Shown one piece after another: positions 5,627 through 52,990 of a stretch of DNA of 64,000 nucleotides. Every line of letters begins with the position of its first letter. Positions within the stretch are counted from its first letter, which is position 1. The stretch lies in assembly GCA_037447605.1 (NCBI GenBank), contig CM074815.1, positions 2,170,001-2,234,000 of the forward strand, read 5' to 3'. This DNA is from Zygnema circumcarinatum SAG 698-1b (lineage: Eukaryota > Plantae > Zygnematophyceae). Below the pieces are notes generated by a model. It worked only from the letters and a program-made list of their open reading frames with translations, searched no databases and was not told where the DNA came from. The position numbers and the translations under genes were made by a program.

Positions 5627-8318
5627 ATCATGCTCTCACGCACTCTCTCCTCCTCTAAATCTCTCTCTCTCTCCTCCTGTTGATCCCACTCTCCCCCCCT
5701 CTCTCCTTCGCTTGCTCTCTCTCTCCCCCCTCTCTCCGCTAGCTCTCTCTCTCCCCTCCCTCTCCTTCTGTAGCTCTCTCTCCCCCTCTCTCCTTCTGTA
5801 GCACTCTCTCCTTCCCCTCTCTCCTTCTCTAGCTCTCTCTCTCCCCCCTCTAGCACTCTCTCTCCCCCTTCTCTCCTCTAGCTCTCCTTCTTCTCTCCCT
5901 CTCTCTCTCCGCCGCTCTCTCAACCCCCATCCCTCTCTCCCCCTAGGAGTTTCCCTAGATGTACAATTTTGACCAGGTAGCATGCATGCATGAATGCGTA
6001 TGTTGTGTCGTGGCCGTCCCACGATGTTCCGTTTGAGGGTTTTTGAGCCCACATTGGCGAGCCCAACTGAGGAACTGTTTGCATGGAAAGAAAACGAAGT
6101 GGCATTGATCTCACCATGGCGATCATGCCATCAAATAAACATGGACAAAATCAGCATTATGGGGAACCACGAGGAACTGGCCGCAAAGGACCTAAGGCCA
6201 AAAGTAAAAAGCTCGGAGCTGAAAGCTACGCCTACGACTAAAAAAAGGTGTCGTTGGGGGCACATGTCAGTCGTTCGTTTTTATTGCAGCATGGAGCCAT
6301 GCCGCGTGGCAGGACGCCATTGGCCAGCCCTTCCAAAAGTGCGCGTGCGTCCGTTTCTATGTGAAAAAATATAGCAAAAAAGAACTTTTTGACGCAGTGC
6401 TTACGTCATTGTTTCGGCAAACCCGGTTTTTCGATTCCAACTGAGAGCTTTGGCCTAGTGGCCGCATTCGCACTCCAAAATGGGGTAAAACTATATTTTC
6501 TTTGGGGTAGTGATATTTCCACCCCTTTTTTGGATCCAAACACCCTTTCCCGGCCGGGCAGATTTCTAAAAGGATTAAAAACGGAAAATGCTTTTTTCAC
6601 ACCTTTTTGGAATCGATACCCACCCTCCATCGGCAGATTTTATTTTTGCGAAACAAGGAAAATGATAAACCGTCACCCCATTTTGAATATCCCGCTTACC
6701 TGAATTTCTTTTCACGCGTGCGGTCAATCGCACCCGTCGATTCCCTCGCAAATCGCAACACGGCAGATCACTATTTGATCTGCAGCCGGGCTCGGTCACA
6801 GCGAATGGCACTGCCCACGTATCCCGCCAAAGTCGCCACAAAAGTTGTTTCGTACAAATGTCGTACGGTCGCAACTTTGAGGAACCCAACATTTCGTACA
6901 TTAGGGGGAGTCAGACCTTGACCATCGCCCGCGGAATTGCAAGATTTCGACCGCGGAAAGGTATTGATTTCGATTTCCGAATTCGGGTCGGAAACCACGG
7001 CTCCCCCCGAACCTGTCTGTCACGTCCGTACGGCGGAATAGGTTACAAAAATGCCCCCAAATTTCAGAATTCTGCGCTCCGAAACGGGGGGCCTCCAGAG
7101 GCCCCCCGTTTCGAAATTCCAGCTTTCCGCCGATCAGGAATCGTGCCCCGCCTTGTCGCCATGCGCGTCACGCACGTGCGAGCGCCTCACCGCCGCCGCC
7201 CGGACGCCGCGACCCGCCGCCGCGCAGAGCAGCGTTTCAGGGCTGGCACAGCTTTAGGGTTTCTCTTTCCCCCACCAACAACACCCACCTTGCGGCAAGC
7301 ACGTCCTCACGGACCTCATAAGCACCACGGGAGAGTGGTCAGCGAGGACGCGAAGTGACGACGGCGGAGTTGAGCAGCGGTGAGTCCTTGCCCTTGCACC
7401 TGCCCCTGCCTCCCTCGCCCTGGCCCATGCCTTCCTTGTCTCCCTTGCTGCTCTTTCTGCTGCTGCTGCTGCTGGTTTTTTTTTTGCTGCTTCTTTTTCT
7501 GCTGCTGTTGCTATTGCTGTGCTGCTGCTGCTCTTGCTGCTGGTACTGGCTGCTGCTGTGCTGCTGCTGCTCTTGCTGCTGGCTGCTGCTGCTGGCTGCT
7601 GCTGCTGCTTCTGCTTCTGCTGTTGCTACTGCTGCTGCTTCTGCTGTTGCTACTGCTGCTGCTTCTGCTGTTGCTCTTATTGCTTCTGCTGCTGCTGCTT
7701 CTGCTTCTGCTGTTGCTCTTATTGCTTCTGCTGTTGCTCTTATTGCTTCTGTTTTTTTTGCTGCTGCTTTTTCTACTGTTGTTGCTCCTATTGCTTCTGC
7801 TTCTTTTTCTGCTGCTGCTGCTGTTGCTGTGCTGCTGCTTCTGCTTCTGCTGTTGCTCTTATTGCTTCTGCTGTTGCTCTTATTGCTTCTGTTTTTTTTG
7901 CTGCTGCTTTTTCTACTGTTGTTGCTCCTATTGCTTCTGCTTCTTTTTCTGCTGCTGCTGCTGTTGCTGTGCTGCTGCTCCTACTCCTACTCCTGCTCCT
8001 CCTCCTGCTGCTGCTGCTGTTGCGGTTGCTGCTCTTGCTGCTGCTGCTACAGCATTCATTATTTTTTTTTGTTGCACAGCAGCATTCATTTTTTTTTTTG
8101 GCTGCTGCATTTCGCATTCTGAATTCCGCATTCCCCATTCCGCATTCGGCATTCCGCATTCCGCATTCTACCTCCCTTGCACCTGCTCCAGCCTCCCTTG
8201 CCTTTGCCCCTTGTTGTGTTGCCCTTGCCTCTGTCTTCCTTGCCTTGTGCCCTTCGTTCCTTTGCTTATGCTTCTGTTGTGTGTATGATTGTATGTCATT
8301 CCTCCCTCTCCCTATTAA

Positions 8319-8389
8319 GTTGAAGTGGCGAATTGGTTACGCAACTGTTGCAAAACAGTAATAAAGGGGTTCAAATCCCCTCTTCAACT
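8319..8389 (+). tRNA. tRNA-Cys(GCA)-like sequence, bacterial/organellar type, anticodon loop one nt short (probable pseudo-tRNA), copy 1
   Basis: Acceptor GTTGAAG/CTTCAAC plus U73; D-arm GCG-AATTGGTTA-CGC; anticodon stem ACTGT/ACAGT around TGCAAA; variable AATAA; T-arm AGGGG-TTCAAAT-CCCCT; T-run just downstream. Confidence 0.65.
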
Positions 8390-8759
8390 TGTAGTGTTTA
8401 TTCACTTTTCTATTTTTATTTATTTAAACTTTTTGTGTTTTTGCTTCATATGCCAAATATTTGTTGTTATTTTTTTTTAGTTGTTTTTATTCTATCTATC
8501 TATTCTTTATTCTATATTTTATCCTATCTGCTGCGGCTGTTGCTCTCGCTGCTGTTGCAGCATTCATTTTTTTTTGTTTTTGATGCTGCATTTTGCAATA
8601 CGCATTTTGCCTCCCTTGCACCTGCCCCAGCCTCCTTTGCCTTTGCCCCTTGTTGTGTTGCCCTTGCCTTTGTCTTCCTTGCCTTTGCTTGTGCCCCTCA
8701 TTCCTTTGCTTATGCTACTGTTGTGTGTATGATTGTATGTCATTCCTCCCTCTCCCCAA

Positions 8760-8838
8760 GTCAAAGTGGCGAATTGGTTACGCAACCGTTGCAAAACATT
8801 GCAACAGTAATAAAGGGGTTCAAATCCCCACTTCAACT
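8760..8838 (+). tRNA. Degenerate tRNA-Cys-like copy 2 (insertion in the anticodon arm)
   Basis: GTCAAAG TGGCGAATTGGTTACGC AACCGTTGCAAAAC[ATTGCA]ACAGT AATAA AGGGGTTCAAATCCCCA CTTCAAC T; acceptor stem mismatched. Confidence 0.5.
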
Positions 8839-9678
8839 TGTAGTGTTTTTATATTCTTCTAATTTTTATTTATTTAAAGTTTTTGTGTTTTTGCTTTATA
8901 TGCCAAACATTTGTTGGTATTTTTTTTAGTTGTTTTTATTGCTTTTTACCATCTCCTTCAAAACTTTGAATTGGGTTGTTGTTGTAGCGCAATTTAGAAC
9001 ATTGAATACGCTTCTCCCATGAATGTACAAATGAAACACAAAGTAATGGCTTGTGTGGAATCTCAAGTGAAGATGCAACGTCAAAGACTGGAGTGGGAGA
9101 AACAACAATGAGAGTTTACTGAGGCAAGGCGAATCCAAGATGAAGAAGAAGAACAAAACTTACAAATATAAGATTCTCAAGAAGAACAAAGATTACACAT
9201 TATTGGAGCAGCGTAAAAAATCTATTAATGTTAAAACATGATATTATTTGCATTTAGAATCGCTTAAAGTAGAGTACAGGAGAACTCAAAAAAGTGTGTG
9301 CACAAAGAGAGGGAGGGAAGGAGGCCAGGGGGGGGGTGTCTTAGTGACACCAGTACTTACTAAATTGAGAATGAATGGCACAAGTTTTTATAATGAGACA
9401 TGGTTTTTATTTTGTATACAAAAAGTATTTTTATATATGTTTGTGTGTATGTATATATGTGTATGAATTATTTGCGTGAATGTGTTTTTATAAGAACAAA
9501 GAAAGAGTAGTAGTTGTGTATGCTACAAGGAAGATTCAGAAACATTTATACAATCTCATCAATTGAAACAAATAAAGGTAAAAAGCAAAAAAGACAACAA
9601 AAAAATAACAACAAATATTTGACATATGAAGCAAAAACACAAAAACTATAAATGAATAAAAATAGAATAAACACTACA

Positions 9679-9749
9679 AGTCGAAGAGGGAATTTGAACC
9701 CTTTTATTACTGTTTTGCAATAGTTGCGTAACCAATCCACCACTTCGAC
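9679..9749 (-). tRNA. Degenerate tRNA-Cys-like copy 3
   Basis: Reverse complement GTCGAAG TGGTGGATTGGTTACGC AACTATTGCAAAACAGT AATAA AAGGGTTCAAATTCCCT CTTCGAC T. Confidence 0.5.
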
Positions 9750-10102
9750 TTAATTGGAAGGGGAGGAATAACATACACTCATACACAACACAAGCATAGG
9801 CAAAGGAACTGGAGGCGGTAGACTGAGGCAAGGGAGGCAGAATGCGGAATGCGGAATGCGGAATGCGGAATGCGGAATGCGGAATGCCGAATAGGGAATG
9901 CGGAATGCAAAATGTAGCAGCAAAAAAAAAGCATGCTGCAACAGCAATAGCAGCAGCAGAAGCAGATAGAATAATATATAGAATAAAGAATGGATAGATA
10001 GAATAAAAACAACTAGAAAAAATAACAACATATGTTTGGTATATGAGGCAAAAACACAAAAACTTTAAATAAATAAAAATAGAAGAATGAATAAACACTA
10101 CA

Positions 10103-10173
10103 AGTCAAAGAGGGGATTTGAACCCCTTTATTACTGTTTTGCAACAGTTGCGTAACCAATCCGCCACTTTGAC
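10103..10173 (-). tRNA. tRNA-Cys(GCA)-like copy 4 (all stems perfectly paired, 6-nt anticodon loop)
   Basis: Reverse complement GTCAAAG TGGCGGATTGGTTACGC AACTGTTGCAAAACAGT AATAA AGGGGTTCAAATCCCCT CTTTGAC T. Confidence 0.65.
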
Positions 10174-12719
10174 TTAATGGGGAGGGGGAGGAATAACACA
10201 CACTCATATACGTAGCAATGGCATAAGCGAAGGAACGGGAGGCACAAGCAAAAGGAAGGGAAGACAGAGGCAAGGGCAACACAGCAAGGGGCAAAAGCAA
10301 AGGAGGCTAGGGCATGGGCAAGGGAGGCAAAATGCGGAATGCGGAATGCGAAATGAGGAATGCAGAATGCAGAATACCAAATGCAGCATCCAAAAAATAA
10401 TAAAAATTGCTGCAGCAGTAACAACATAAAAGCAAAAGCAGAAAAAGCAACTCCAAAAAAAGCAGCAGCAGCAGCATCAACAATAGCAGCAGCATAAACA
10501 GCAGCAACAGCAGCAGTAGTAGAAAAAGAAGCAATAGCAGCAGCAGCAGCAAGAGTAACAACAAATAGCAATAGCAACAGAAAAAGAAGCAGCAGCAGGA
10601 GCAGCAACAGGAGCAGCAACAGGAGCAGCAACGGCAGCAACAGTAGCAACAGCAGCAGCAACAGCAACAACAGCAGTAACAACAGCAATAGCAACAACAG
10701 CAGCAACAGTAGCAACAGTAGCAGCAGGAGCTGTAGCAATAGCAGCAGGATAAGAAGCGACTAGAGCTGCAGCAGTAGCAGCAGAAACAGCAGCAACAGC
10801 AGCAGCAACAGCAACAACAGCAGTAACAGCAACAATAGCAACAACAGCAGCAACAGTAGCAACAGTAGCAGCAGGAGCTGTAGCAGTAGCAGCAGGATAA
10901 GAAGCGACTAGAGCTGCAGCAGTAGCAGCAGAAACAGCAGCAACATCAGCAGCAACAGCAACAACAGCAGTAACAGCAGCAACAGCAGCAACAGTAGCAG
11001 CAGGAGCTGTAGCAGTAGCAGCAGGATAAGAAGCGACTACAGCTGCAGCAGTAGCAGCAGAAACAGCAGCAACAGCAGTAGCAGCGGCAGCAGCACAACA
11101 ACAACAGCAGAAACAGCAGATGAAGAAGAAGAGGCAGCAGCAGCAGCAAAAAAACCAAGAGCAAAAAAAGCAACAGCAACATCAACTGCAGCAGCAGGAG
11201 ATGTAGCAGCAGAAACAGTATCAACAGCAGTAGCAGCGGCAGCAGCACAACAACAACAGCAGAAACAGCAGATGAAGAGGAAGAAGAGGCAGCAGCAGCA
11301 GCAAAAAAAGCAAGAGCAAAAAAAGCACCAGCATAAGAAGCAGGAGCAACATCAACAACAGCAGCATAAAAAGCAGCAACAGCAGCAGTAGCAAAAAGAG
11401 CACCAAGGGAGACAAAGGATGCATGAGCAAAGGCGAGGGAGGCAGGGGCAGGTGCAAGAGCACAGGAGGCAGGGGCAAGGGAAAGGGAGGCAGGGGGAAG
11501 GGCAGGGAAGGCAGGTGCAGAGGCAAGGGCAAGGGAGGCAGGTGCAAGGGCACGGGAGGCAGGGGCAAGGGTAAGGGAGGCAGGGGCAAGGGCAAGGACT
11601 CACCGCTGCTCAAGTCCGCCGTCGTCCCCATAAACCGATCGCGCTCTTGCCGTGGTCGACGGCACACCGCTCACCGTTCACTGGGGTGAGGCGAGAGGAC
11701 GCTCTGCTCGTTCCGCTGCAAGGATAGCTCGGCCATGGCGAGGGAGGAGCCCTAAACCCTAAACCCGAGCTGATATGAGCTCGCAGCGAGCGAGCAGGCG
11801 GGCAGGCGGCGGGCGCGAGGCGCCGCGGCGGGACGCCGGTCGCGCGGTGGTGACGCGCGTAGCGACAAAACGGAGGGCGGCGGGCGGCAGGCGGCGGAGG
11901 GAGCGCGGGGGGGCGAAAAGGGGGGAGTCAAACCTGGCCCGGAGATACGGAGGCAAAATAATTGCTCTCTGGAATTCGTGACGCCCGAGCCTGTCGAACG
12001 TCCACTTTTCGCGGAATTGGGCTGCCGTACAACGCGGAATTAGGGTCGGGGGTTTTCTGAATTGATTTGGCGCTGGTCTAAGTCTGACTCCCCCTATTGA
12101 GAGCTTGGACCAATCAAAATTTCCACGTCAAAAATGTAACACGTGGCACCTGTTGATTGGCTGGGAGCTAACAATGACGAGATCTCGGGCCGATCGACGC
12201 GCGCACTCGCACGTGCGATTCGGCTTTGACGGGACTCGTGGGCGCTTTCCATTCGCTAAGATCGAGCCCGGCTGAAGATCGAACGGTGACCTGCAGTGAT
12301 GCGATCTGCGAGGGAATCGACAGCTGCGATTGACACACACGTGTGAAGGACGGACACCGGCGAACAATCTCGTGGCGGACGGATCTTCCACTTCGAGCGG
12401 ATTCGGGCTGGCAGATATTTCTTTCCCTCAAAAAAAAATTTCAGCTAGGCGGGATACAGTATTCAAAATGCAGTGACGGGGTATCATTTTCCTTGGTTAG
12501 CAAAAATAAAATCAGCCGACGGAAGAAGGTGGGTATCGATTCCAAAAAGGTGTGAAAAAAGCATTTTCCGTTTTTAATCCCTTTTGAAATCTGCCCGGCC
12601 GGGAAGGGGTGTTTGGATCCAAAAAAGGGGTGGAAATATCACTACCCTTTCTTTGCTTTTGTTTAAATAAAACAAGGAAAAACGACAAAAATAAACCACA
12701 GCTAAACGACAAAATTATT

Positions 12720-13205
12720 CCACGTGGCGACCACTGAAGAAGCATAAGCTTCGACCAGCTGTCACGTAACGACAAGTGGACTACACCTGCAACGTGGCCT
12801 GTTTCAAATGGCCAGGCTTCCTTTTGTCCCGCCCCTGCCCTTCCTCTCCGCCAATCACAAACCGACTTCGCACGTGTGAAAAAAACTTTCCAACTCGACT
12901 CGCGTTGAAAAACGAGACTCGGCCCGGTTTGCAACCTGCGAAGTAAACCGGAACAGAGAACGCGCCCAATACCCTCTTTGTACCCGATCCCACGTGGCTA
13001 GCCCCGGCCCGGCCCGGCCCATCGGCGCGATCTCCCGCGCGAACGGTCGACCAATGGGAGCGCTCCGCCGAGCCACGCGGATCAGGCCAGCCGCCACGTG
13101 GACACGAGGACCACCACGTGGCGTGCAGGGATTGGCTGGGAGGCGCCAATCCCGGCGGGTTTCAGCAGGGGAGATCTGGCGGGGCGCTGAGCGGGCGCCA
13201 CGTGG
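12720..13205. promoter_or_regulatory. G-box/ABRE cluster (CCACGTGG) with CCAAT boxes upstream of the F-box gene
   Basis: CCACGTGG at about 12720, 12990, 13094, 13116 and 13198, with CCAATC/ATTGG motifs, directly before ATG 13302. Confidence 0.5.
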
Positions 13206-13301: not shown

Positions 13302-14317
13302 ATGTCGAAGGGGCTGTGGGCGGAGGAGCTCGCGGCCATGGTGGGGGCGATGAGGCTGGGGAGTGCGGCGGAGTTTCCGGAGGAGATACTGCTTCAGGTG
13401 GGAGAGAGGGAGAGGGAGAGGGATAGGGAAGGGAAGAGGGAGAGAGCAAGGGGAAGGAGAGAGTGAGAGGGAGGAGGACATGGGAGAGAGTGAGTGAGAC
13501 AGGGAGAGAGATGGAGAGAGTGGGAGAGCGAGACGACGATGGAGGGAGAGGGAGAGAGAGGAGGGACGGGGAGGAAGGGAGAGTGGTTGGGAGAGGGATA
13601 CGGAAGTAACAGGGAGAGGGAGCGAGAGAGTTATATAGGACATGGAGAGGCAGGTGGTGCGACAAGGAGTGGGAGCGTGAGAGCGAGAGGGAAGGTGAAG
13701 AAGGAGAGAGGGAGGGAGAGACGCACAGAGAATAGAGAACAATGGGAGAGGAAGTGGGAGGTGAAAGGAGTTCATTTAAACCATGCATGCGATTCTCGCA
13801 CGTGTCAGGATTGTGTGCAGGAAAAAACAGGTTACAGGTTAAAAACAGGTTTCAATTACTTTGAAGAAGTGCAGCAGTTGTTTGCACGAGGGCAGGCATT
13901 TGGAGACCTCCAAGTGTTGTCTGGAGGTCACACGGGAGGGAGAGGGAGAGGGAGTGGGAGTGGGAGGGGAGGGAGGGAGGGAGGGAGAGGGAGAGGGAGA
14001 GGAGAGAGACAGAAAGGGAGGGAGGGAGAGGGAGAGGAGAAGGGAGAGGGAGGGAGGAAAGGGAGGGAGGGAGGGAGGGAGAGGGAGAGGGAGAGGGAAA
14101 AGAAAGGGAGAGGGAGAAAGGAGGGGGAAGAAAGGGAGGGAGGGAAGGGTTCAAGTCCGAGAGGGAAAGGGAGGTTGAAGGACAACGACAAGGAGAATAG
14201 GAAGGAGGGAAGGTGGAGAAGAAGGAAGTTAGTGAGAGATAGAGAGAGTAGAGAGGAGGCAGCAGAGGGAGAGCGAGAGAGAGTGAGGGAGAGAGAGTAG
14301 AGGGAGAGAGAGAGGAG

Positions 14318-14371
<54 letters not shown>

Positions 14372-16591
14372 GCGCTAGTCCCGGTAAAGAAAGGGAAAGG
14401 TACATTTTTATAACACAGGAATGCGAATGCTACAACAGCATGCCAGCTGACGGATTTCGAGAATGACAGAGTTGTCAAATTTTGCATAGAACCGTCAGTT
14501 GCAGTATCTTCCATAATTTGCTATTTTTTTTTTTCAACAGATCTTTTCCCAGCTCAATGCGGACGACCTGATACGTGCCTCCCAAGCAAACAAGAGATGG
14601 CGCCAAATTTCGTGTTCGGAGGAGCTTTGGCAGAGACTCTGCCGCAGGAGGTGGAGGATCTGGGGAGGTTCCATGCCCAGTCCGTTTGAAAATCCGTTGA
14701 GTGTTCCACTAGTCGACGGAACTGCAGCGGAGGACATGGAACCGCCGCGGCCTGCAGAAGCGGGGGAGGGGGCTGACGGCGGTTCTATGCACGCTCGAGC
14801 CGTAGTGGGTGACGGAACGGAGCACATGCGCAGAGGGGTTGATGCTGGTGCTGGAGCAGAAGATGGAGGCGGCAGCGCGGAGAGGGAGAGGGAGAGGGAG
14901 GGGCGGGGAGAGAGGGAGAGGGAGGGAGAGAGGGAGGGGGAGGGGGAAAGGGGAAGGGAGAGGGAAGGGGAGGGGGAGGGAGAGAGGGAGAGGGAGGGAG
15001 AGGGGGAAGGGGAGAGGGAGAGGGAGACAGAAAGGAGGCTGTCGTGGCGGGAAGTGTACAGGGAGAGAGTGCAGATGGAGGGAGAGGTGCGAAGGCTGGT
15101 GGAGGACATGGCATGGCCTTTGAAGCGGCCAGGATGTCTGCGACGCCTTGAAACGTTAGGGGTGCTTGTAGCAGAGGTACTTTCTCTCACTCTCTCTCTC
15201 TCTCTCGCTCTCTCTCTCACCACTCTCTCGCTCACTCCCTCTTTCACTATCTTCTATCCCGAATGTGTACATGATGTTCATTGCTTGTTTCCCTTCCATC
15301 TTTCTCTTACTCTGCCTCGACTGCTTCTCTGTGTCTCACTCTCCCTGCTCCTGTCGATCCCCCCTTTTACCCTGCCTCCATCTCTTTAACAATCATTTGA
15401 TTTCAACTCATATAAACACAACAAGAAGCCAAAGACACCTCCTATTTCCAGAGCAACTTTCTAACCTTTTCAACTCTGAAACCCGGATCTTGAACCCCCG
15501 CTCCCGCTCGCTTCCTCTCTCTCCCACTCCCTTCCTCTCCCTCTCTCTCCCCCTCTCTCCCTCTCTCCCTCTCTCCCTCTCTCCCTCTCTCCCTCTCTCC
15601 CTCTCTCCCTCTATCCCTCTCTCTCCTCTCCCTCTCTCCTCTCTCCCTCTCTCCCTCTCCCTCTCTCCCTCTCTCCTCTCCCTCTTCCTCTCTCTCCCTC
15701 TCTTCCCTCTCTCCCTCTCTCCCTCTCCCTCTCTCCCTCTCTCCCTCTCTCCTCTCTCCCTCTCCCTCTCCTCCTCTCTCCCTCTCTCCCTCTCTCCCTC
15801 TCTCCCTCTCTCCCTCTCTCCCTCTCTCCCTCTCTCCCTCTCTCCCTCTCTCCCTCTCTCCCTCTCTCCCTCTCTCCCTCTCTCCCTCTCTCCCTCTCCC
15901 TCTCCCTCTCTCCCTCTCTCCCTCTCTCCCTCTCTCCCTCTCTCCATCCTCTCCCTCTCTCCCTCTCTCCCTCTCTCCCTCTCTCCCTCTCTCCCTCTCT
16001 CCCTCTCTCCCTCTCTCCTCTCTCCCTCTCTCCTCTCTCCCTCTCTCCTCTCCTTTCCTCTCCCTCTCTCTCTCCCTCTCTCCCTCTCTCCCTCTCTCTC
16101 CCTCTCTCCGTCTCTCCCTCTCCCTCTCTCCCTCTCTCTCCCTCTCTCCCTCTCTCCCTCTCTCCCTCTCTCCCTCTCTCCCTCTCTCTCTCTCCCTCTC
16201 TCCCTCTCCCTCCCTCTCTCCCTCTCTCCCTCTCTCCCTCTCTCTCTCTCCCTCTCTCCCTCTCTCCCTCTCTCCCTCTCCCTCTCTCCCTCTCTCCCTC
16301 TCCCTCTCCCTCTCTCCCTCTCTCCCTCTCTCCCTCTCTCCCTCTCTCCCTCTCCCTCTCTCCCTCTCCTCTCTCCTCTCCTCTCTCTTTCTCATCCTCT
16401 CTCCTCATCTCCCTCTCCTCTGCTCTCTCTCTTCTCTCTCCTCACAGGAGCTGAACCGGCTCAGGAGCGGGGCAGCCTGAGGGGGAGGCTCGTCACTTGC
16501 GCAGCAGCAGTGCAGCGATCACGCGCGGGCCTGCGTGGAGGAAATGCGGACCTTTCTCGCGCTGCCGCAGGAGGAGGTCTCTCTCTCTGTT

Positions 16592-24105: not shown

Positions 24106-24847
24106 CGCCACGTGGCGCTGCGCAACTCCGCCACGTGGCTCGCACCGCCGGCCGGCGCCGCTCCGTTCGACCGCCAACAAACAGACAATTTTTGTTTCTG
24201 AGAAGCTATTTACACACCTTCTTTAGCTAAATACACGCCTTGTTTCGCCGGTCAGATTTTAGGGTTTAGGGTTTTTAGGCTTTTAGGGTTTTTGGGGTCT
24301 TTAGGGTTTTTTTCGTTTTTGAGAAAAATGATTATACGGAGGTGGTACAGTACAAAAACGTACGAATATGTATCGATCTAATATCGTATAATATCGTCTT
24401 ACGATATATCGGCCAATTTTTGTATCGAATATACCGCAATATATCTCGTTGAGATATATATTTAAATATCGTAACTAAAGACAAGAACCAGAAGCGTTTC
24501 CATGGTCCACAGTTAGCTCGAGATTTGAGAAATATTTTCTTTTGGGAACTTTCGGCTCCAGTGAGGTGACCACGTGGCGGTGCCCTCTGCCAGCGTGGCA
24601 CTGTACTGCTTTCAGATTCCCGCTGAGGCCGGCCCTTTTCCCCCTCGGCCCGTTTCCTCGTTTCTCATTATTCTTCGACCGTAATTCGTAGTTTTTTTCG
24701 TCCCTAATTTGTAATTTTTTCCCTGGAATTGCGAGGATTACGGATCTAAAAATTCTTCCTGCAAGAAAGAATTCTTAGATTCGTAATACTTGGTTTTTTT
24801 TTTCTCTTTTTTTTTTTTTTTTTGCTTTTGCTTTTTTTTGGGTTTTG
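24106..24847. promoter_or_regulatory. Bidirectional promoter region between the microprotein and the TRIP4-AlkB gene
   Basis: Head-to-head starts about 740 bp apart. Contains CCACGTGG G-boxes (24109, 24131, 24570), TAGGGTTT telo-boxes (24260-24310) and an ATATCG-rich patch (24365-24470). Confidence 0.5.
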
Positions 24848-52394: not shown

Positions 52395-52990
52395 GCCACG
52401 TGGTGGCCCGAGCGCTCTGAACTGACTTTTGATAACACGTGGCACGATGTCATGAGTGCATTCTCGCCACGTGGTGGAATGGCGTCGCCCCACGTCAAAA
52501 CCATTTGTTACATGGCGCCACGTGGCATTGAATGGGCGAGCGGACGACAATTGGAAACCGCGGGCCAATTATTGTCGGCTCCAATAATGGCGAGTGATGA
52601 CGTGGCGGGTCAGTTATGAGTTTACGACAAGTGCGAAGGCATTGTCAACACGACAAAATATGTGAACTGAACGAATCATTTGATGCCACGTGGCGCTTCT
52701 TTGTGAACGGGAAAATTAACGTTCGGCTGAACCTTTTTTGGATTGCCGTATTTGAAGGGAAATTTAAAATATCAAATTTAAGAAATATTTACAAAAGTTG
52801 TAAACGCGCTTGCTACGTCGAACATTCCCATTGATGAGTCAGCATGTGATTCGCATGGAAGCCACGTGACGACCTATCATTGGATATGTCGACATGTGCT
52901 ACGTGGAGTCCCACCATTGGCTATGATTCGCATGCACGTCACCCGGCGTCTTTCCATTGGAAGGCGTTCTCATGCATGCCACGTGGCGTC
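52395..52990. promoter_or_regulatory. Dense G-box/ABRE cluster upstream of the carrier gene
   Basis: About seven CACGTG cores (mostly GCCACGTGG) plus ACGTGG/ACGTC variants and CCAAT motifs in 600 bp. Confidence 0.5.

Follow-up and report, generated by a model that had tools for sequence, protein, structure and literature searches.

A foldback-type DNA transposon with four tRNA-Cys-like sequences in its arms in the streptophyte alga Zygnema circumcarinatum

The foldback element and its arms

We analysed a 64,000-nucleotide stretch of DNA from the zygnematophyte alga Zygnema circumcarinatum SAG 698-1b (assembly GCA_037447605.1, contig CM074815.1, positions 2,170,001 to 2,234,000 of the forward strand), hereafter called the window; all positions are counted from its first letter. 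The window contains a long foldback element with inverted ends, and the arms of this element carry four sequences shaped like tRNA-Cys genes of bacterial type. Self-comparison of the region placed the element at 6505-12647 (6,143 bp), and a global alignment showed that its left arm (6505-8950) and its right arm (9577-12647) are homologous from end to end. The terminal ~210 bp of the arms are 89% identical (92% without gap columns), the middle sections being more diverged and carrying insertions and deletions (indels). Both ends of the element read GGGTAGTGATATTTCC, a 16-mer found nowhere else in the 64-kb window, and both are abutted by the octamer TTTCTTTG, at 6497-6504 and 12648-12655, identical at 8/8 positions: a target-site duplication. 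Because its terminal inverted repeats (TIRs) are 89% identical over ~210 bp, its arms can be aligned over their whole length and the 8-bp duplication is perfect, 6505-12647 is a non-autonomous foldback-type class II (cut-and-paste) DNA transposon. A foldback transposon had been proposed here before, from the letters of the DNA, at 8280-10210; the TIRs and the target-site duplication bear out the kind of element, but not its extent, which is far larger than that prediction had it.

The window holds a single copy of the element. The possibility that an inner foldback is nested in an outer element was ruled out, since there is neither a target-site duplication nor a discontinuity at 7357/11637 and the arms can be aligned across these points. 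An 8-bp duplication is compatible with hAT elements, and also with P and some Mutator-like elements, which likewise produce duplications of this length. The TIRs begin with GGGTAGTG, not with YARNG, the consensus start of hAT TIRs, and no transposase was seen in the element. Its parts are listed here from left to right, with what each assignment rests on (TRF, Tandem Repeats Finder; ORF, open reading frame).

6497-6504, no strand: left target-site duplication TTTCTTTG, read directly, the same as 12648-12655
6505-6712, plus strand: left TIR, starting GGGTAGTGATATTTCC, matching the reverse complement of 12432-12647 at 89% identity
6713-7384, plus strand: left outer arm, CpG-rich, diverged from its partner, homologous to it throughout with indels (global alignment); short ORFs
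7385-8048, plus strand: left block of 21-nt CCCTTGC-type repeats, then degenerate (CTG)n with a 140-nt higher-order repeat (TRF, repeat search)
8049-8500, plus strand: arm subrepeat unit 1, ~440 bp, holding tRNA-like copy 1; 87-89% identical to its right-arm mirror unit and 88.5% to unit 2; heptamers by TRF
8501-8950, plus strand: arm subrepeat unit 2 (repeat search, self-comparison)
8951-9576, no strand: central foldback loop, 626 bp, unique, AT-rich; no second copy in the window, short ORFs only
9577-9989, minus strand: arm subrepeat unit 3, mirror of unit 2 (self-comparison)
9990-10420, minus strand: arm subrepeat unit 4, mirror of unit 1 (self-comparison)
10421-11600, minus strand: right block of (AGC)n, in which higher-order repeats measure 147-152 nt, and of 21-nt GGCAGGGGCAAGGG repeats (TRF; inverted match to 7385-8048)
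11601-12431, minus strand: right outer arm, CpG-rich, no coding-looking ORF (alignment, ORF list)
12432-12647, minus strand: right TIR (inverted match to the left TIR; end 16-mer)
12648-12655, no strand: right target-site duplication TTTCTTTG, read directly

Read from the outside in, each arm thus consists of a CpG-rich stretch, 21-nt repeats, a degenerate CTG/AGC microsatellite with a higher-order period of 140-152 nt, and two tandem units of ~440 bp, each built of GCATTCC heptamers, 21-mers, a tRNA-like sequence and a T-rich tail. In the sequences flanking the tRNA-like copies, mirror-partner units share identities of 0.91 and 0.91, compared with 0.88 and 0.85 for tandem neighbours. Mirror partners are closer than tandem neighbours, and the two-unit arm is therefore older than the divergence of the arms. 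No coding-looking ORF was found in the element, whose ORFs are short or of low complexity, those of the loop and of the outer arms being assessed without a protein-family search; for two ORFs, one spanning the tRNA units and one in the arm, a protein word search returned no homologues.

The base composition of the arms is uneven. The ratio of observed to expected CpG reaches 1.26 for 6505-7384 (left TIR and outer arm) and 1.25 for 11601-12647 (right outer arm and TIR), and the GC content of the outer arms is 55-57%; the tRNA-bearing units are depleted in CpG (0.46-0.64), and the remaining window lies at 0.59-0.68. In these respects the transposon ends resemble GC-rich DNA that is unmethylated or was acquired recently. 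The outer arms also contain plant-telomere-type motifs at mirrored positions, 7254-7263 and 11750-11766 (TTTAGGGTTT, two CCCTAAA units), and a near-perfect palindrome of 34 nt (94%) lies in the left one at 7080-7113.

The four tRNA-Cys-like copies and their bacterial type

The tRNA-like sequences of the ~440-bp units are the following.

8319-8389, plus strand: copy 1, well preserved, loop TGCAAA, acceptor stem GTTGAAG/CTTCAAC (Rfam 51.7 bits; ARAGORN)
8760-8838, plus strand: copy 2, degraded, with an 8-nt insertion in the anticodon arm, two acceptor-stem mismatches and one in the T stem (Rfam 25.7 bits; alignment, pair counts)
9679-9749, minus strand: copy 3, degraded, with changes in the A and B boxes and mismatches in the anticodon and T stems; ancestral acceptor stem GTCGAAG/CTTCGAC (Rfam 30.2 bits; pair counts)
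10103-10173, minus strand: copy 4, well preserved, acceptor stem GTCAAAG/CTTTGAC (Rfam 51.5 bits; ARAGORN)

Matches to the Rfam tRNA model RF00005 at all four places confirm what the original prediction had described, namely four tRNA-shaped units, two in each arm and facing inward; the inward orientation follows from their position in mirror-image arms. Unless permissive filters are used, copies 1 and 4 give the sole matches above gathering scores in the window (window E ~3e-8; the gathering score of RF00005 is 29 bits); copies 3 and 2 came up only with such filters, at 30.2 bits (above 29) and 25.7 bits (below 29). The covariance-model match to the tRNA family on which that prediction had staked itself is therefore there for copies 1, 4 and 3, copy 2 missing the score. 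ARAGORN recovered the outer copies only, as "tRNA-???" with a four-base anticodon gcaa, a call under which the stem would be of 4 bp and the loop of 8 nt.

In each of the four copies the loop is TGCAAA, 6 nt long where 7 nt are expected, and the Rfam alignment shows one column deleted relative to the tRNA model, in agreement with the missing loop base that had been predicted. None of them combines the 7-nt loop, the U33 and the three-base anticodon of a functional decoder. In the minimum-energy fold of copy 1 the anticodon arm becomes a 6-bp stem closed by a GCAA tetraloop, and an arm capped in this way, if it folds as modelled, cannot present an anticodon. Other features that had been noted were read in every copy: U73, an acceptor helix that can be extended to 9 bp (AA upstream, TT downstream), and downstream T-runs, which lie in the T-rich tail. 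The quoted A-box and B-box sequences hold for copies 1, 2 and 4 but not for copy 3, where the boxes read TGGTGGATTGG and GGTTCAAATTC. Likewise, the acceptor stems described as perfectly paired are so in copies 1, 3 and 4; left unmentioned was copy 2, whose stem GTCAAAG/CTTCAAC contains two mismatched pairs. The 8-nt insertion of copy 2 consists of locally duplicated sequence; it gives rise to a perfect hairpin of 7 bp (GTTGCAA AACA TTGCAAC, 8786-8806) and could be misread as a tRNA intron.

The module carries the hallmarks of a bacterial-type tRNA-Cys: the GCA triplet, U73, A37, a 3-bp D stem (GCG/CGC), an unpaired 13/22 and a loop of the form ..TGGT.A. Such a D-arm is unlike that of cytosolic eukaryotic tRNA-Cys. 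A pattern describing the architecture (TGGCG.A.TGGT.A.GC, 6-8 nt, TGCAAA, 11-16 nt, GGTTC.A.TCC) matches at least 120 bacterial genomes and at least 117 viral contigs. Among the 120 bacterial records listed, 94 are Alphaproteobacteria, 11 Saccharibacteria or other candidate-phyla bacteria, 7 Actinomycetota, 3 Clostridia and 5 unclassified; cyanobacteria contribute none of these 120 matches. Copies 3 and 4 have the D-arm GTGGCGGATTGGTTACGCA; 24 metagenomic loci contain exactly this sequence together with the TGCAAA loop and the beginning of the B-box, and the six of them on which ARAGORN was run were all called tRNA-Cys(GCA). The bacterial type proposed for the module is thus upheld: like tRNA-Cys(GCA) genes of bacteria (alphaproteobacterial) and phages, it has the D-arm TGGCG[G/A]A.TGGTTACGC with its 3-bp stem and unpaired 13/22, the loop form ..TGCAAAA, the B-box GGTTCAAATCC and U73, and the genes that share its D-arm layout, TGCAAA loop and U73 are real ones, mostly of Alphaproteobacteria and phages. 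Unlike them, it is one loop base short, differs in four stems, reaches 76% identity at best and sits in nuclear repeat DNA.

A foreign origin, which had also been proposed, did not find the same support. At best, the module shares 65-76% identity with a tRNA-Cys sampled from bacteria, phages or metagenomes (76% for bacterial or viral genes, 73% where the D-arm is exactly the same), and all four of its stems differ from every sampled tRNA-Cys gene. The phage and plasmid collections contained no near match: blastn ("distant") with the 77-nt unit gave only partial, insignificant matches there (E >= 0.05). The specific D-arm pattern had no match in viral contigs, and neither the metagenome nor the viral contig collection contained an exact 23-mer of the module. 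The simplest alternative is that the donor was the host's own mitochondrial (alphaproteobacterial-type) trnC, a source which by this comparative argument would be equally or more likely than a foreign one, because the mitochondrial tRNA genes of streptophyte algae were inherited from the alphaproteobacterial ancestor (PMC13578239). Transfers of tRNA genes from bacteria to organelles are also on record, including that of a sugar-beet tRNA-Cys (PMC13578239).

Two of the metagenome contigs with the exact D-arm deserve mention. One (L261), of 41% GC, was considered as a mitochondrial sequence and rejected, as it encodes a Mur ligase, a leucyl-tRNA synthetase and an aldo-keto reductase and is bacterial. 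The other (L249) carries at 29-680 a tight array of six tRNAs (Ser, Cys, Val, Thr, Leu and one unusual four-base anticodon call), in which the tRNA-Cys and the algal module have exactly the same D-arm; a phage or a bacterium is the probable source of the array.

Decay or constraint

The tRNA-like sequences vary as their surroundings do. Across the four units, 19/79 columns are variable in the tRNA and 43/145 in the flanks (Fisher p=0.44). Two pairs have changed on both sides, and the resulting covariation score of the four copies was reached in 129/500 shuffles. The acceptor stems differ at two CpGs that pair with each other (a palindromic TCGA in the stem), with the states CG/CG in copy 3, TG/CA in copy 1, CA/TG in copy 4 and CA/CA in copy 2. 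With independent decay of each CpG to TG or CA, double decay should leave a Watson-Crick pairing in 1/2 of the cases, a G-U pairing in 1/4 and a mismatch in 1/4; two paired copies and one mismatched copy were observed, which is the prediction of chance. The acceptor-stem differences are thus explained by decay of two paired CpGs. The compensatory change that the original prediction had seen in these stems cannot be distinguished from such decay, and nothing supports the roles it had suggested for the module (Pol III, that is RNA polymerase III, promoter; source of tRNA fragments; tRNA mimic), given that two copies out of four are degraded and that the tRNA varies like its flanks.

All together, these results make it probable that the transposon carries a tRNA-Cys module of bacterial/mitochondrial type that was captured once, was amplified passively and is decaying neutrally as passenger DNA. 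In such a scenario, 6505-12647 would represent one old insertion of a non-autonomous foldback-type transposon with long arms of nested tandem repeats, and one ~440-bp repeat unit of its lineage would have taken up, on a single occasion, a module from a tRNA-Cys(GCA) gene of bacterial type (alphaproteobacterial/mitochondrial style). The module would have been without one anticodon-loop base before it was amplified, whether the sequence captured was a gene or an already-short pseudogene, and its arm would then form the 6-bp stem with GCAA tetraloop that presents no anticodon. Multiplication would have been passive, first through tandem duplication of the arm unit and second through the mirror symmetry of the arms, and the four copies in this insertion would now decay at the rate of the neighbouring DNA. 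The sequence itself shows how the element is built and where it ends, the type of the tRNA and the absence of added conservation or covariation; the single capture, the passenger status and the absence of decoding we infer. Judging by their sequence, the two intact A-box/B-box pairs might possibly retain some binding of Pol III/TFIIIC.

Some observations weigh against simple neutral decay. CpGs have decayed in 6/8 site-copies of the acceptor stem and in 1/8 of the D-arm, which contains the A-box (Fisher ~0.04, for copies that are not independent). This retention is at most a hint at constraint on an internal promoter, because of that non-independence and because the way in which changes are shared points to exchange among the units. 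In the outer pair, moreover, both double changes of the acceptor restore Watson-Crick pairing. The sample is four copies from one insertion, and selection acting on the master copies of the family would be compatible with it.

Such selection is at the heart of the strongest alternative, in which the module belongs to the working parts of the family and is maintained through selection on master copies, as a boundary or transcription unit bound by TFIIIC/Pol III or as a structured small RNA capped by a GNRA tetraloop. The contrast just described speaks for it, D-arm CpGs being kept in 7/8 site-copies and acceptor CpGs in 2/8, as do the intact A-box and B-box, the T-runs within ~35 nt downstream of the two outer copies, and the perfect cloverleaves of these copies despite ~9-13% divergence of the flanks. 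However, conservation is not significantly above that of the flanks, half of the copies are broken, the covariation does not exceed what shuffling yields, and T-runs are expected anyway in a T-rich tail, so that we consider a functional module unlikely. A more specific form of the same idea, which is slightly less likely still, would make the one-base-short module itself (GNRA-capped arm, 9-bp acceptor) a selected element of mitochondrial or bacterial ancestry, recognised by Pol III/TFIIIC and set symmetrically in both arms; with the same low probability, the foldback family might use it as, for example, a chromatin boundary or a structured small-RNA unit.

Somewhat more doubtful is the view that the tRNA head and its T-rich tail began as a tRNA-derived short interspersed nuclear element (SINE), which inserted in the foldback arm and was then duplicated with it. 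A tRNA-like head followed by an unrelated tail is the general layout of plant SINEs, and here a head with A and B boxes is indeed followed by a conserved tail of ~110 nt, T-rich and unrelated to tRNA. But in none of the four units does a convincing target-site duplication surround the tRNA-plus-tail module, and no free-standing copy occurs elsewhere in the window; moreover, SINE heads derive from nuclear tRNAs, whereas the present head is of bacterial/mitochondrial type. That the copies are working tRNA genes, reading cysteine codons or, through an 8-nt loop, a four-base codon in the manner of frameshift tRNAs, is very improbable: ARAGORN models a four-base anticodon gcaa, two copies have high cloverleaf scores and U73 and GCA are present, but neither a 6-nt loop nor a 4-bp stem with an 8-nt loop gives a normal decoding arm, the acceptor helix runs on through the discriminator base, the D-arm is not of the cytosolic eukaryotic kind, and the copies, two of the four damaged, lie in a decaying non-coding transposon.

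Surroundings, known systems and meaning

Outside the transposon, copies of the palindromic G-box CCACGTGG number 18 in the window (0.37 expected) and are grouped in three tight clusters, at 12720-13205, 24108-24577 and 52396-52986. These clusters are probably promoters of the G-box/ABRE (abscisic acid-responsive element) type; the first starts 65 bp to the right of the transposon, which would thus adjoin a promoter. A second set of inverted repeats, of low complexity, lies at 13936-14365 and 15500-16443, matching at ~77-78% identity in many registers, and is possibly another foldback-like structure.

With Drosophila Foldback (FB), Galileo (P superfamily; "two-TIR" non-autonomous copies) and rice Tnr8, the element shares very long inverted arms that make up nearly the whole of it. 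It further resembles foldback-like transposons in the tandem repeats inside its arms, whose copy number and length are unequal between the two arms, in lacking a transposase, as most of their copies do, and in its short target-site duplication. This duplication is of 9 bp in FB. It is of 7 bp in Galileo (PMC3573991), compared with 8 bp here, and the tandem repeats inside Galileo TIRs, of ~210 bp, expand and contract (PMC3573991). The present arms, at 2.4-3.1 kb, far exceed the maximum of 1.2 kb in Galileo, and two features set the element apart from all the foldback systems named: its host is a streptophyte alga, and its arm subrepeat contains a tRNA-derived module.

Neither the type of tRNA nor its multiplication is without parallel in the plant lineage. 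A bacterial-like tRNA-Cys(GCA) gene has been reported in sugar beet's mitochondrial genome (Kubo et al. 2000, as cited in PMC13578239). As far as that citation goes, both cases place a bacterial-type tRNA-Cys outside its normal compartment; the sugar-beet gene lies in mitochondrial DNA, whereas the copies described here are nuclear, borne by a transposon and structurally defective. The zygnematophyte Penium margaritaceum has ~1,450 tRNA genes, and inflation of nuclear tRNA counts has been attributed to the activity of transposable elements (TEs) (PMC13578239). The present locus likewise shows tRNA-shaped sequences multiplied by TE activity in a genome of zygnematophyte type. That account gives neither a mechanism nor an element; here there is a specific foldback carrier with a specific defective tRNA-Cys module.

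Units of this kind exceed covariance-model thresholds, and thus inflate the number of tRNA genes counted in algal and plant genomes rich in TEs; with the carrier known, and with the 6-nt loop as the diagnostic defect, annotators can mask them. If the module were transcribed or bound by TFIIIC, for which nothing here provides support, it would add a new example of Pol III elements being spread by a transposon. As a captured passenger, which is how we read it, it would mean that a tRNA gene of organellar or bacterial type can be taken up and multiplied in the nucleus by a foldback DNA transposon.

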